Source: Isurus oxyrinchus
Lineage: Eukaryota
Assembly (NCBI GenBank): GCA_026770705.1
Contig: JANJGN010000546.1
Coordinates: forward strand, 186,001-250,000
Length of the DNA: 64,000 nucleotides
Direction: 5' to 3'
Shown: in pieces, positions 5,752 to 21,169 of the stretch
Layout of the letters: the number at the start of each line of letters is the position of its first letter
How positions within the stretch are numbered: the first letter of the stretch is position 1
Made by a program: the position numbers and the translations under genes
The notes under the pieces: model-generated
Databases searched by the model: none
What the model saw: only the letters and a program-made list of their open reading frames with translations
Told to the model about the DNA's origin: nothing

Positions 5752-5791
5752 ATGATCGGGAAATCTTACTTCCTCCTGTCACTTCTCCAAG
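5752..5791 (+). CDS. Gene 1 signal-peptide exon, MIGKSYFLLSLLQ (exon 5712-5791, ends in phase 1)
   Basis: Acceptor ttctttcacag at 5711, ATG at 5752, donor G|GTAATA. Splices in frame to V1 to give MIGKSYFLLSLLQVGLS-QEWKG. Confidence 0.85.
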
Positions 5792-8700
5792 GTAATATCA
5801 TTGTCAGCTTGGACAGATTTATGGTGAATAGTCTTTGTAAAAGATCATTCTTATTGAGCTGTGATTGGGAACTGATTCAGCAGTGAGCCAGTGTACAAAC
5901 CCACACCAAGTCCCATTCACCCATCACCCCTGTGCTCACTGATATACACTGACTCCCTGTCTGACAGCAGAATTTGAGGAGAGCAGAGATCTCAGAGGGT
6001 TTTAGGGTTGGAGGAGGTTACAGAGATTCAGATTATAGAGTGGGGTGGATGTTGGGGTAATAAATCAATGATGAGAATTTGAAATTTGAGTCATTACTGG
6101 ACTGAGAGTCAGTGTAGGTCAGCCAGTGACAGGGGAGCGATCGGCTGAATAGAGAATCAGGAATACAACTGGGGGATGAAGTCTATCCTGATGTTAGGAC
6201 TCGGATAAAAATGCCCTGAAATTTTGTGTCATTTGCTGATTTTGTCAGAATTTCCCATGAAGACAACACAGCAGCTCCTAGAATAGACAGGCTGTTCAGT
6301 GTCACACTTCCTGTCCATTCTCACCATGCTAGAAACTTCAATAAGGGAGCAAGATAACTGAAAGAGAGAAGGGAGGCAAAGCTGTCTGTGTGTAAAGGTG
6401 TCAAATATTCTGAGTTATCATGAGTGTCTCTGATCTGCTGCAGAGTTTAAATTTCACAGAATCTGAGCACTTTGCAGCTCAGAGAGAGACCATTGACTCA
6501 CTGCCTGAAAGGGCGGTGGAAGCAGATTCAACAGGAACTTTCAGAAGGGGAACTGGATAAATACTTGAAGGGGACATTTTGCAGGGCTGTCGGGGAGGGA
6601 GCAGAGGTGAGTGTGGGACTAATTGGACAGATCTTTCAAAGGCCCAGCACAGGCTCGATGGGCCAAATGTCTTCCTTCTGTTCCGGATCATTCTACAATC
6701 TGATAAATTGAGCCCCACATCAATAACTCTTCAGGCTCCGGCTGCAGGGATGGATCTTTGAGAAGGCAGGGAACAAAGGTTTCTGGTATCATATTCATAT
6801 TTCTTGACAATTACATAAGTGTATAGATCTGTTGAATATTTGAGTCTCTAAAGTGTAGAAGTAATCTGCTGATAGGCCCAGATCTTGTGGTGGTAACCTT
6901 GTCTGGAGGTGTCTTTAAATGCTCACAGTGATCTGTGGGATTGTCATTCTTTGATGTTGTCCCTGATTTCAATTGGCATTTTGCCCTTGATGCAATTGGG
7001 GAGGCTTTAAACTAACATGGCAGGGGATGGGATCCTGAGAGTAGGTTCAGCAGAGGGAGATGCACAGCCAAAATTAGAAGAGAGAGCAAGTGAACCTAGC
7101 AGGCAGAGAAATTATTGGCCAGTTAAGGCACAAGATAGCGTGGCAAAGTTGGATTGTATTTATTTTAATGCAAGGAGTCTGACAGAAATGCATTCTCCTG
7201 CAGGTGTAATGTTGCAGCTCCCTTGAAACTGCCAATATTGTTGAAACTTTCTGCATATTTTAATGTTATGTCATGAGCTGAGGTAATGGGGTAGTTTCTG
7301 AGACATAAATCCATTGGCTTTCGGCCGGACCGGACAATCCTAGCAGTGGGTGGGGCCAGAACATCCCACCCCTATGGGACATTTTCAGTTTATTTGATGA
7401 TGCCAGAGAGATCATTAAGGACAACAATCCACAATTTATTGGCAAGCCACGTCAGGATATGTGTGAGAGGTGGAATATCGATCACCGCTCCTCGTCTCAT
7501 CGTGCACATCATCGCCATTTCCTGGTTTGTCAGTCACCACATGTCTATGTTCCTGATGGGATAGCGGATGGTCATTCTTATTGCTTGAAGGTTCCCCGTT
7601 GTGCAGGGTCTGTTTGGATCAGCGCACGGCTCTCTGTAGCTGCATCAGCCTTTGCTCTAGTGCCCTGCCGCTGTCAATGGCCCTTTCTGCCACAAGCCTT
7701 GCAAGATTGGTGGAAAGCTGGGCATTTCCTTGGTGCCTGCAGAAGGCCACACCTTCCACACATCTCACTAGGTTTGGATGTTCTAGTGAGTGTGCCAACA
7801 ATTGATGTTGTACTGAGGACCTGTAAGCTTCGTTGACCTGCGAGGATCACTTCGTATTTATGTCCATCCTTGAGTAGCTCTTCAATGCTATAGGTTTTGG
7901 TCTTATCTAGCAGATCTTTCTGGAAGACGTCCATGGGAGTGGATGTGATCACCAACTCAACAACTGTGTCTGCAGGCTCTATGTCTGAAATCACAGTGCG
8001 TACCCTTTTCTCTACATCGGCTGATGAAGTGGTCTATGGATTGTGTAGGCTGATGAAATGACATAAACTCTAGTTGATGAATATGGAGTTTCACCTGATT
8101 CTGAACCTATCTTCCAATGTTGTCCATATCTATTGGGGATCCTTTCACTCTTCTGCTGTTAATCCTGACGTGTGCAGCCTGTGTAGACCTTCATTCCCAA
8201 CCGCGAGGTGAATTTTTATGGCTTGTTCGTCTTGTTCAGTCACACCTGAATCAGGAAACCAGAGCTCTGTACGCTGTTTAAAAATTCTGAATTCAGATAG
8301 TCGGTCAGCGACATCCCAGTTAAAACTGGGGAATTTCGTTGACATTCTGACAATATTCCTTTGACCTTCCTTGACATGAGAACAGATATACTAGGATAGA
8401 AAGCTGGGAGACACCTGCAGCCAAACTGTGTGAGCTGTGTTCTGCTCACAGGCCAAAGTGAAACTTGGACTGGATGGTGTTATCATCCCAGCTGATGTTA
8501 CTACTGGGCAAGTCAGATCCCAGGGTGGAACTCAGCTTGATAGATCCTAACTTTTATTGTTTATTTTGGAATGTGGAGTGCGGCTACTGAACAGAGTCAC
8601 AGGAGTCATCTGATGAACTTCTAACAAAAGAATAAAATATTTATTAAACAAGAAAGGATGATCTATAGGACAATACTGCTTCACCCAGACCTATACCTTT

Positions 8701-20700: not shown

Positions 20701-21169
20701 AGCGGGAGAGATTACATGATAAATAGAGAGAGAAAGCAAGAGAGAGAGAGAGAAAGAGAGACAGAGAAAGAGATTGAAAAAAAGGAGACAGAGAAAGAGA
20801 GTGAAAAAGAGGGTTAAACCCATTGAGACATGACTGACAGTAACGAGGCTGCAGAATAATTTAACCCTATCAGTGCCAGTAAATGATGTGAGGATGTCTT
20901 CTGTTTCCATTTCTCTGTAGGGTAAACAGAACGTGCTGATTACTGAGCCCCGGAACACAACCAGAGACACAACTAGTGAGGGGGAGACCCCAGCTCCCCG
21001 GGGTCTCTCTGAAGGTCCAGTGGGAGGCGATGTTGGACATGGGAACCCTGACAAACCCGTCGAGCTTCTCTACGCCAACATCAACTTTTCAAAGCTGCCC
21101 GGCGGTGACAGGACTGTGCACAGGAGCGAGGACACGGAATACGCACAGATCAGGTTCCAGAAAAACTGA
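5752..21169 (+). CDS. Complete Siglec-like (CD33/MAG-like) inhibitory receptor gene 1; 7 coding exons, 1509 nt, 502 aa (L-V-V-C2-TM-ITIM-ITSM)
   Basis: Exon lengths 40+375+369+297+97+82+249 with compatible phases and GT-AG introns. An additional exon inside the N-masked 15.9-17.5 kb region cannot be excluded. Confidence 0.82.
7180..8370 (-). mobile_element. Degenerate Gypsy-like LTR retrotransposon fragment (gag region)
   Basis: Minus-strand MSTKFPSFNW..FRIFKQRTELWF..GNEGL and zinc-knuckle-like CGRCG..CPA..CKACGRKGH; frameshifted. Confidence 0.75.
9070..9930 (-). mobile_element. Solo-LTR-like element, same family as 21461-22356
   Basis: Reverse complement of both ends matches 21461-22300. 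A partial copy lies at about 58175-58490. Confidence 0.6.
10336..10710 (+). CDS. Gene 1 V-set Ig exon 1 (Siglec type; essential Arg replaced by Gly)
   Basis: cccag| and |gtaagt boundaries, phase 1-1. Siglec signature GSCxQIPC..W..GDCSLII..EDxGxYFFx with B-E strand Cys and no F-strand Cys. Reads YFFGIE where Siglecs have YxFR. Confidence 0.92.
10930..11950 (+). mobile_element. L2/CR1-clade LINE reverse-transcriptase fragment
   Basis: RPISSLSFLSKVLERV..QSG..ETALIKVTN..LLDLSAAFDTLDH; disrupted. Confidence 0.85.
11955..12640 (+). repeat. Degenerate ~37-bp tandem repeat (CTCTGTAACCTCCTCCAGCCCCTACAACCCTCCCTAT) at the LINE 3' end
   Basis: Direct inspection. Similar arrays at about 320-450 and 60345-60900. 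Confidence 0.8.
13020..13440 (-). mobile_element. Non-LTR retroelement 3' fragment (RTE/Vingi-like)
   Basis: GFQLPRPEWSLL motif on the minus strand. Duplicated at about 61040-61460. Confidence 0.5.
13490..14280 (-). mobile_element. CR1-type LINE 3' fragment
   Basis: QKDLGVVVHES and FKTEMRRNFLSQR..LWNSLPQRAVEA motifs. Duplicated at about 61500-62290. Confidence 0.85.
14337..14705 (+). CDS. Gene 1 V-set Ig exon 2 (Siglec type; essential Arg retained, YFFRID)
   Basis: ccccag| and |gtaagt boundaries, open frame, phase 1-1. Same Siglec signature plus an extra Cys in YPSCLE. Confidence 0.92.
15434..15730 (+). CDS. Gene 1 C2-set Ig exon
   Basis: ttag| acceptor (second in-frame AG at 15442) and G|GTAAGT donor. 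Encodes DFTDKPTIFP..VSCTFNTTC..LTW..LSCRVRYP..LTVQ, with the Siglec domain-2 inter-domain Cys and N-glycosylation sequons NTT and NGT. Confidence 0.92.
15884..17527. other. N-masked or gap blocks interleaved with (CA)n-rich low-complexity sequence
   Basis: Runs of N. Further runs at 25078-25311 and 26219-26523. Confidence 0.95.
18585..18681 (+). CDS. Gene 1 transmembrane exon, GRDSSKWTVGLFTAGIMLSVFLAGIFIFICVRK
   Basis: tttttacag| and AA|gtaagt boundaries, phase 1 to 2. Uncharged hydrophobic helix followed by a basic stop-transfer sequence. Confidence 0.88.
19559..19640 (+). CDS. Gene 1 cytoplasmic exon 1, RKTAMEERVSGTSDITLTPSPLSVKHQ
   Basis: tattgcag| and CAG|gtacag boundaries. Phase 2 to 0 bridges the TM exon and the terminal exon exactly. 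Confidence 0.78.
19850..20470 (-). repeat. 33-bp minisatellite array, inverted orientation, in the last intron of gene 1
   Basis: Reverse complement of the 455-4945 unit. Confidence 0.95.
20921..21169 (+). CDS. Gene 1 terminal cytoplasmic exon with ITIM (LLYANI) and ITSM/ITIM-like (TEYAQI) motifs
   Basis: ttctctgtag| acceptor, phase 0, stop TGA at 21167-21169. The motif pair is typical of inhibitory CD33-related Siglecs. Confidence 0.9.
   Translation, partial: GKQNVLITEPRNTTRDTTSEGETPAPRGLSEGPVGGDVGHGNPDKPVELLYANINFSKLPGGDRTVHRSEDTEYAQIRFQKN

Follow-up and report, generated by a model that had tools for sequence, protein, structure and literature searches.

A Tandem Pair of Siglec-Family Genes With Twin V-Set Exons in the Shark Isurus oxyrinchus

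Introduction

In its textbook form, a Siglec bears a single sugar-binding head, and the CD33-related members of the family (CD33, Siglec-5, -7 and -8) carry a single V-set domain. A departure from this plan is Siglec-12, to which two V-set domains are attributed in one article, where the human protein, Siglec-XII, is stated to have become unable to recognise sialic acid through the substitution R122C (PMC6288428). Here, we describe two tandem paralogous genes of the Siglec family, gene 1 and gene 2, found in a 64,000-nucleotide stretch of the genome of Isurus oxyrinchus (the window; GenBank assembly GCA_026770705.1, contig JANJGN010000546.1, positions 186,001 to 250,000 of the forward strand), in which all coordinates given below are counted from its first letter. 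Each of the two genes bears two Siglec-type V exons, V1 and V2, ahead of one C2-set exon, and gene 1 ends in an immunoreceptor tyrosine-based inhibitory motif (ITIM) and an immunoreceptor tyrosine-based switch motif (ITSM).

Primate Siglec-12, represented in this study by the Rhinopithecus SIGLEC12 protein (P0077), resembles the exon order of the shark genes in its two tandem N-terminal V-set domains preceding a C2-set domain; a further similarity is the presence of a fourth cysteine in the V domain that stands behind another V. This cysteine is located in the C-C' region of the primate protein and in the BC loop of the shark V2, and the shark genes, unlike primate Siglec-12, have only one C2 exon. 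The two systems are not orthologous: V1 and V2 of the primate protein cluster with mammalian V domains, whereas the shark V domains form a group of their own. The name 'Siglec-12' has been given by NCBI to several shark models. With the CD33-related Siglecs, which alongside MAG are the best matches of the shark V domains in the Protein Data Bank (PDB), the shark genes share the cysteine pattern of the V-set domain and, in V2, the arginine of the YFFR motif, and the shark C2 domain matches domain 2 of CD33; they differ from them in having two V exons instead of a single V, and their V domains are not nested in the tetrapod Siglec clade.

Two shark gene models are particularly close to gene 1. 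The Siglec-12 isoform X3 of Cetorhinus maximus (XP_078389734, P0003), an automatic NCBI model, shows the same order of leader, V1, V2, transmembrane (TM) segment and tail; its V1 is the tree sister of V1 of gene 1 (V1g1), with 81% identity, and its V2 and tail are 87 and 81% identical, respectively, to the window by tblastn. Both P0003 and gene 1 have a Trp/Arg-rich loop in V1, a BC-loop cysteine in V2 and the tail motif TEYAQI; unlike gene 1, P0003 is an isoform model without a C2 domain and keeps the arginine of V1. In Carcharodon carcharias, the 'CD33-like isoform X1' (XP_041037177, P0156) contains the V domain closest in the tree to V2 of gene 1 (V2g1; 88%) and shares with gene 1 the same C2, TM segment and ITSM, its C2 being joined directly to the TM segment; unlike gene 1, it has a single V, devoid of the BC-loop cysteine.

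Two Paralogous Genes With Twin V Exons

Gene 1 extends on the plus strand from 5752 to 21169 and consists of leader, V1, V2, C2, TM, cytoplasmic and last exons (Table 1). When the window was searched by tblastn with its own exons, the V exons proved to be four and the C2 exons two, with a single tail exon for the ITIM and ITSM, all of them on the plus strand, and this search, together with the exon borders, confirmed for both genes the twin-V layout that had been noticed in a preliminary description of the locus. All four V exons are open, have lengths that are multiples of three and are of phase 1-1, with a polypyrimidine-AG acceptor and a G/GTAAGT donor, and phase 1-1 and canonical splice sites are common to all of the Ig exons. 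V1 and V2 of gene 1 are 84% identical in nucleotides; the distance from one to the other is 3.6 kb, and the intron that separates them has unique sequence. The exons of gene 1 are in phase and correspond one by one to those of P0003 and P0156; the searches with the spliced model were likewise run with single exons and not with joined sequence.

Gene 2 is located within the window, beyond gene 1 and outside the range given in the preliminary description, in one copy of a segmental duplication of about 11 kb that relates 5157-15871 to 51606-63905. The copy at 51606-63905 contains the leader, V1, V2 and C2 exons as in gene 1; gene 2 then passes the end of the window after its C2 exon, so that its tail falls outside. 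The runs of N present in gene 1 lie wholly between the C2 donor at 15730 and the TM acceptor at 18585, the longest of them being 581 letters. Since these two splice sites are both of phase 1 and the Carcharodon model P0156 joins C2 directly to TM, the model of gene 1 is independent of the gap, and an exon inside the gap was rejected as a required part of the gene on the same grounds.

Membership in the Siglec Family

The four V exons match the Pfam V-set family with E-values of 1.6e-10 to 9e-12, and Ig_CD22 matches as well. When V2g1 was compared with the sequences of the PDB, the best 18 distinct sequences were all Siglecs, headed by Siglec-5 (3.2e-15) and followed, in this order, by MAG, Siglec-8, -7, CD33, -10, sialoadhesin and -15; in the same search, the arginine of the YFFR motif of V2g1 aligned to that of Siglec-5. 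The first 12 matches of V1g1 were also all Siglecs. For V2g1, the E-values obtained with Siglec-5, MAG, Siglec-8, -7 and CD33 were better than those with Siglec-15 (1.6e-08) and CD22 (2.7e-04), and the matches of V2g1 to pIgR ranked below the Siglecs, with only about 40 residues aligned. The C2 exon belongs to Pfam C2-set_2 (5.1e-07), and its PDB matches are led by nectin-4, followed by CD33 domain 2 (2.5e-04), MAG, Siglec-10 and Siglec-8. The named relatives are, without exception, called Siglec or CD33-like. The assignment of the V exons to the Siglec type, made beforehand from the letters only, is thus upheld by Pfam and by the leading PDB matches of both V1 and V2, and the attribution of this satellite-rich vertebrate DNA to a cartilaginous fish agrees with the fact that each named best match is a shark or ray protein.

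The cysteine pattern of Siglecs is present in all four V exons, with C-x4-C (SCVQIPC), GDCSL and no cysteine at the F-strand YFF, and aligns with that of Siglec-5. The predicted fold of these exons has a disulfide from the B-strand to the E-strand in place of the B-F bond, plus an extra B-strand cysteine. In the C2 exon, the motif C-x5-C includes a cysteine that, as in CD33, is presumably the interdomain partner of this extra B-strand cysteine. The F-strand arginine that is essential for sialic acid in Siglecs is retained in V2 of both genes (codon AGA), within YFFRIDF in gene 1 and YFFRIEF in gene 2, and is lost in V1 of both, where it is replaced by glycine in gene 1 (YFFGIEF, GGA, 10647-10649) and by threonine in gene 2 (YFFTIKF, ACG). 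Because the two replacement codons differ and the arginine is kept in the V1 of Cetorhinus, the tree sister of V1g1, these changes suggest two separate losses, one in each gene.

The membrane span of gene 1 has no charged residue, and the reading of its last exon agrees with the inhibitory tail proposed before, with the ITIM LLYANI and the ITSM TEYAQI and 22 residues between the two tyrosines. We take this tail, with an ITIM, a membrane-distal TxYxxI and an uncharged membrane span, to resemble that of CD33. As judged from their sequences, the two genes are members of a shark Siglec family, predicted to be inhibitory and resembling the CD33-related Siglecs; considered as a single locus, they are routine and well-behaved members of that family.

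A Cysteine Restricted to Stacked V Domains

In both genes, V2 contains an extra cysteine in the BC loop (PSCLEN in gene 1), seven residues past the B-strand cysteine. Among elasmobranch V domains, this residue was found in eight of the 11 that follow another V and in none of the 30 that are first or only V domains, and the two single-V members of the V2 clade are also without it. In C2, the second cysteine (CTFNTTC, C-x5-C) occupies the equivalent place. This distribution suggests a disulfide between the B-strand cysteine of V1 and the BC-loop cysteine of V2, which would provide a partner for the spare cysteine of V1. The occurrence of the cysteine only in V domains standing behind another V leads to a testable structural prediction, a V-V disulfide, and argues that the stacked layout exists in the protein. 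The C-C' loop of V1 is rich in Trp and Arg and is nearly identical in the window (GIWYMRRYWDRWSTWS) and in Cetorhinus (GIWYMRRYWETWSTWS).

A comparison with tetrapod models bearing direct-tandem V domains, which included P0077, P0042 and P0049, gave a varied picture: V2 of primate SIGLEC12 (P0077) and V2 and V3 of Xenopus have a fourth cysteine at other positions, in Bufo the B-strand cysteine is lost from both V1 and V2, and in Hyla and Pelodytes nothing is altered. Tandem-V Siglecs of independent origin thus seem to deal with the spare B-strand cysteine in more than one way.

Exon Use in RNA

Of 23 transcript runs listed, four (X1, X4, X6 and X7), all of them contig sets, were aligned to the segment 10250-15850 at 92% likeness. 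Three of these four, X1, X6 and X7, contain a GT..AG joint that connects 14705 with 15434, its shorter side in X6 measuring 101 letters, and V2 is, thus, spliced to C2 in RNA. The V1 exon reaches a depth of about 400-426 in X1, compared with 13-20 in the bins of the intron that immediately follows, a difference of about 20-fold, and low-depth contigs of the same run cover the intron between V1 and V2. One X1 contig, with a depth of 94.5, connects V1 sequence that stops at 10661 with 14338, at the first bases of V2; it has 30 letters on the shorter side, the intervening letters are not known, and its right side is made of the bases that begin V2 and tell it from V1. Since a mosaic of a single V would jump to the paralogous position, as does an X4 contig that passes from 14657 back to 10677, the X1 contig is read as a V-to-V2 junction. 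No joint from V1 to C2 was found among the 15 of 160 joints listed.

The inclusion of V1 and V2 in the same transcript is, on these data, likely. The double-V receptor advanced in the preliminary description stands as far as the genome is concerned, where the twin exons are in frame and ordered; as for their presence in one transcript, the support comes from one contig in one of the four runs. A protein search with the V1g1 exon, which covered proteins of 0.55-1.75 times the length of the query and is uninformative on longer relatives, gave four matches for five candidates and no fragment from RNA assemblies spanning V1 and V2. The four matches are NCBI models of 139-217 amino acids, three of which (P0157, P0158 and P0011) are single-V by hmmsearch, the fourth being P0061.

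Relatives and Phylogeny

A HMMER search of the full library with V2g1 produced 1272 matches at E <= 0.001, and the best seven of the 150 representatives listed contain 2-4 V-like stretches each. They are the Siglec-12 isoform X3 of Cetorhinus maximus (leader, V1, V2, TM and tail), the Siglec-8 isoform X3 of Scyliorhinus canicula (three V domains), Siglec-12 and Siglec-13 of Mustelus asterias (two each), Siglec-12 of Scyliorhinus torazame (two), a partial Siglec-12 of Hypanus sabinus (four) and a hypothetical protein of Chiloscyllium. In addition, frog models named 'Siglec-12' (Bufo, Hyla and Xenopus) have two to three V domains. The identity of the window to these models is 87-91% at best, with no exact match, and its source is therefore a further shark, near the lamniforms. 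The earlier view that two V domains are almost a privilege of Siglec-12 was therefore overstated, given the multi-V proteins already annotated in sharks, a ray and frogs. The multi-V layout is already in the automatic annotation of these animals, and the association of the cysteine with stacked V domains is the one new point made here. In the main texts of the articles searched, no description of Siglecs with several V domains was found for sharks, rays or frogs. Supplementary file 9 of the whale shark genome paper lists Siglec gene families and may bear on what has already been tabulated (PMC8455134).

The evolutionary relationships were analyzed with IQ-TREE on 44 V domains, a set with no rows for CD22, MAG, Siglec-1 or Siglec-15. 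The tetrapod V domains form a clade of 17 rows (support 100/99), separate from a fish clade of 27 rows (100/99) that includes the V domains of the window, and the elasmobranch domains are outside the tetrapod group in this 44-row tree. With V1 and V2 of primates in the tetrapod clade and the V domains of the window in the fish clade, an origin independent of mammalian Siglec-12, as had been supposed, is supported. In primate SIGLEC12, as in each frog species or group, the V copies cluster among themselves, and therefore the tandem V arose several times. Within the fish clade, V1g1 pairs with V1 of Cetorhinus (98/89) and V1 of gene 2 (V1g2) joins both (98/96); the V2 copies are in a separate clade of eight rows (99/88), in which two single-V proteins are included. 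The V1 clade is shared with Cetorhinus, the V2 copies lie apart from it, and the twin layout is therefore older than Isurus oxyrinchus.

Divergence Between the Two Copies

The comparison of gene 1 with gene 2 reveals an uneven distribution of differences. The V1 exons are 87.2% identical, with flanks of 90.0% upstream and 95.5% downstream, and the further introns reach 97-99%; the V2 exons are 92.9% identical, with flanks of 97.2 and 95.3%; the C2 exons are 99.0% identical. Insertions and deletions in the exons occur only in threes. Since the V exons diverge faster than the introns, we infer that they are probably being diversified in the germline with C2 held constant; furthermore, a dead exon would drift at the rate of the introns, which argues for V1 as a working domain. 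The expansion of the family by tandem duplication, proposed at the outset, fits the existence of the two copies, in which the V exons outpace their introns. The synonymous divergence (dS) of V1 is 0.21, above that of the introns, and patchy gene conversion from other paralogues is therefore a possible alternative to diversification by point mutation.

Along the duplicated copies, identity is 87-90% at V1 and upstream of it, 97-99% in intron 2, 99% in C2 and 71% just past C2, a profile that looks like patchy gene conversion or parts of different ages.

Proposed Mechanism

We consider it probable that the two genes are tandem paralogous shark Siglecs with a V1-V2-C2 ectodomain, in which V2 holds the sialic-acid site, a disulfide links V1 to V2, and the ITIM and ITSM convey inhibition. 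The inclusion of both V exons would give rise to this ectodomain, whose membrane-proximal V2, with its arginine kept, is the predicted sialic-acid-binding domain, and whose distal V1, with its arginine lost and its Trp/Arg-rich C-C' loop, may act as a modulatory head or may bind a ligand that is not sialic acid. V1 would be stapled to V2 by a disulfide between its 'interdomain' cysteine, which in ordinary Siglecs has its partner in C2, and the cysteine of the V2 BC loop. Binding of the ligand would then be followed, by homology with the CD33-related Siglecs, by phosphorylation of the ITIM and ITSM tyrosines, recruitment of SHP-1/SHP-2 and damping of leukocyte activation. If this were true, the genes would represent a shark counterpart to human Siglec-XII, whose outer head lost sialic acid binding, and an innate inhibitory receptor family would be seen to widen its recognition surface by the amplification of exons.

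A broader proposal, which we put forward as conceivable though doubtful, is that the elasmobranch V exon might be an amplifiable cassette, with 2-7 V domains stacked by newly evolved head-to-tail disulfides, each from the B-strand cysteine of the outer V to the BC-loop cysteine of the inner one, that copy the V-C2 bond, and with the outermost head, its arginine lost and its Trp/Arg-rich loop conserved, turned to a ligand that is not sialic acid; the spare cysteine would have met with other solutions in primate Siglec-12, Xenopus and Bufo. This would be an undescribed general rule for multi-headed Siglecs, and the products would be germline-diversified innate receptors. Apart from this proposal, the locus adds to the evidence from automatic annotation that multi-head Siglecs arose independently in sharks, rays and frogs and that sharks continue to diversify the heads in the germline.

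Alternative Explanations

A number of observations weigh against a stacked and diversifying receptor. In other species, the proteins with several V domains come from automatic gene models, which are prone to include every in-frame exon, and the masked gap of gene 1 could hide an extra exon. The ratio of nonsynonymous to synonymous substitution (dN/dS) over the whole exon is 0.60-0.65 for both V1g1/V1g2 and V2g1/V2g2, hence not above 1, a value that is neither proof of positive selection nor a sign of neutrality. The BC-loop cysteine is missing from 3 of the 11 V domains behind another V, and the models of Hyla and Pelodytes show no cysteine compensation. As regards RNA, the canonical joint from V1 to V2 (10710 to 14337) was not found among the 15 of 160 joints listed, and the contig joining 10661 to 14338 possibly derives from a paralogue whose V1 has a 3' end unlike the reference. 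The depth of V1, taken from its second bin, is lower than that of V2 in all four runs (about 400 against 1150-1350 in X1, 0 against 11-25 in X4, 2.6 against 257-414 in X6 and 8.5 against 257-532 in X7), although contig depth cannot rank the parts of a gene and paralogues cross-map at 92% likeness, for which reasons it was rejected as a measure of V1 inclusion; at this likeness V2-type exons gather more paralogue reads, V1g1 and V1g2 being only 87% identical.

These RNA data would fit alternative cassettes, with each transcript taking V1 or V2 and never both, so that one gene would produce two single-V receptors, only one of them binding sialic acid. Such an arrangement would be allowed by the phase 1-1 of both V exons, the skipping of either of which stays in frame, and by their equally strong splice sites; the depth of V1 far under that of V2 in X4, X6 and X7, the absence of the canonical joint and the closest relative of V2 in Carcharodon, the single-V gene P0156, point the same way. 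However, V1-type sequence runs into the first bases of V2 in the X1 contig, no joint from V1 to C2 is among the 15 listed, and tandem V domains occur in the automatic models of five named elasmobranch species; moreover, the BC-loop cysteine tracks the state of being preceded by a V and would be unpaired in a protein with V2 only. We regard mutually exclusive use of the two exons, the main rival reading, as unlikely. It is also improbable, in our estimate, that an old exon duplication left V1 as a pseudo-exon, decaying or seldom used, and that the working receptor is V2-C2. The loss of the essential arginine in both genes and the low depth of V1 in three of the four runs would suit this idea, but V1 is open, with indels only in threes and intact splice sites in both genes, it belongs to a clade common to Cetorhinus with a near-identical unusual C-C' loop, it diverges faster than the introns rather than at their rate, and in X1 it is about 20 times deeper than the neighbouring intron.

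The remaining explanations question either the family or the assembly. A V-set family of another kind (pIgR/CD300-like, PILR-like or NITR-like), merely resembling Siglecs, might be suspected from the pIgR, JAML, TIM and PILR chains that appear lower in the PDB lists and from nectin-4 as the best PDB match of the C2 exon, sugar binding being itself a prediction; yet Siglecs fill the first 18 places for V2 and the first 12 for V1 with full-domain alignments, against about 40 residues for pIgR, and the Siglec cysteine pattern, YFFR, the C-x5-C of C2 and a tail with ITIM and ITSM are all present, which makes a family other than Siglecs very improbable. We give still less credence to the second V exon being an artefact of assembly, a collapsed or duplicated sequence near a gap, in spite of the gaps and the many satellites in the vicinity: V1 and V2 are only 84% identical over their nucleotides, 3.6 kb apart and separated by a unique intron that low-depth X1 contigs cover, and gene 2 and the Cetorhinus model both show the same pair of V exons.

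Features of the Window and Surrounding Sequence

The coordinates of the exons and of the other features of the window are collected in Table 1.

Table 1. Exons of the two genes and further features of the window.
Feature	Position	Strand	Remarks
Gene 1 leader exon	5752-5791	+	MIGKSYFLLSLLQ; phase-1 donor CAAG/GTAATA; identical to the N-terminal part of P0003 and P0156, both shark Siglec models
Gene 1 V1 exon (V1g1)	10336-10710	+	Siglec-type V-set, membrane-distal, 375 nucleotides (nt)
Gene 1 V2 exon (V2g1)	14337-14705	+	Siglec-type V-set, 369 nt
Gene 1 C2-set exon	15434-15730	+	DFTDKP...LTVQ; CTFNTTC = C-x5-C; acceptor set by the GT..AG joint of the spliced contig
N runs (masked or gap)	15884-17527	.	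CA-rich simple sequence between runs; inside the C2-to-TM intron
Gene 1 TM exon	18585-18681	+	GRDSSKWTVGLFTAGIMLSVFLAGIFIFICVRK; matches TM of P0003 and P0156
Gene 1 cytoplasmic exon	19559-19640	+	RKTAMEERVSGTSDITLTPSPLSVKHQ; matches the corresponding segment of P0003
Gene 1 last exon	20921-21169	+	ITIM LLYANI 21065-21082; ITSM TEYAQI 21134-21151; stop TGA 21167-21169
Gene 2 leader exon	52199-52238	+	40/40 nt identical to gene 1 leader
Gene 2 V1 exon (V1g2)	58730-59107	+	378 nt; Arg replaced by Thr
Gene 2 V2 exon (V2g2)	62354-62719	+	366 nt; Arg and BC-loop Cys retained
Gene 2 C2 exon	63458-63754	+	99.0% nt identity with gene 1 C2
Second TM-plus-tail cassette (TM', cyt' and last exon)	43736-43831, 44528-44620, 47118-47231	+	TM' exon SNEWKAGLLGAGICLSVGLSGFFIFKCVRK; last exon ending SVYGNL
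Further cyt' exon copies	5230-5301, 49456-49536, 51656-51748	+	Just upstream of each leader
Orphan leader copy	about 49980-50019	+	MIRKSYFLLSLLQ
33-bp satellite, seven places	454-4939, 19854-20470, 27974-28365, 30439-30977, 39124-39669, 41264-41478, 51174-51378	both	19854-20470 in the last intron of gene 1
43-bp unit arrays	30976-39127, 48572-49289		The first of 8 kb
24-bp unit array	45366-47019		1.65 kb
Intron repeats	11933-12680, 13429-13989		Very deep in RNA
Retroelement open reading frames	10931-11630, 22375-22797	+	Reverse-transcriptase-like; in gene 1 intron 2 and downstream of gene 1

Between the two genes, a second and different TM-plus-tail cassette is present. Its TM' exon is 97% identical to the TM of the single-V shark model P0017, and a cyt' exon and then a last exon come after it; three tyrosines of P0017 are replaced in this cassette, which might serve gene 1 as an alternative 3' end or be what is left of a third gene. 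Scans for open reading frames and tandem repeats found, apart from this cassette, mostly satellites and no other gene between gene 1 and gene 2. Further copies of the cyt' exon stand just upstream of each leader, and between a third, orphan copy of the leader and the leader that comes after it there is no V exon; the unit of duplication thus covers the 3' end of a gene together with the 5' end of its neighbour.

Between the genes, satellite arrays take up the greater part of the 30 kb, and the 33-bp satellite is found on both strands of the window. Two repeats in the intron between V1 and V2 are very deep in all four RNA runs, and reverse-transcriptase-like open reading frames of retroelements, judged by eye, are located within gene 1, in its intron 2, and also downstream of this gene.

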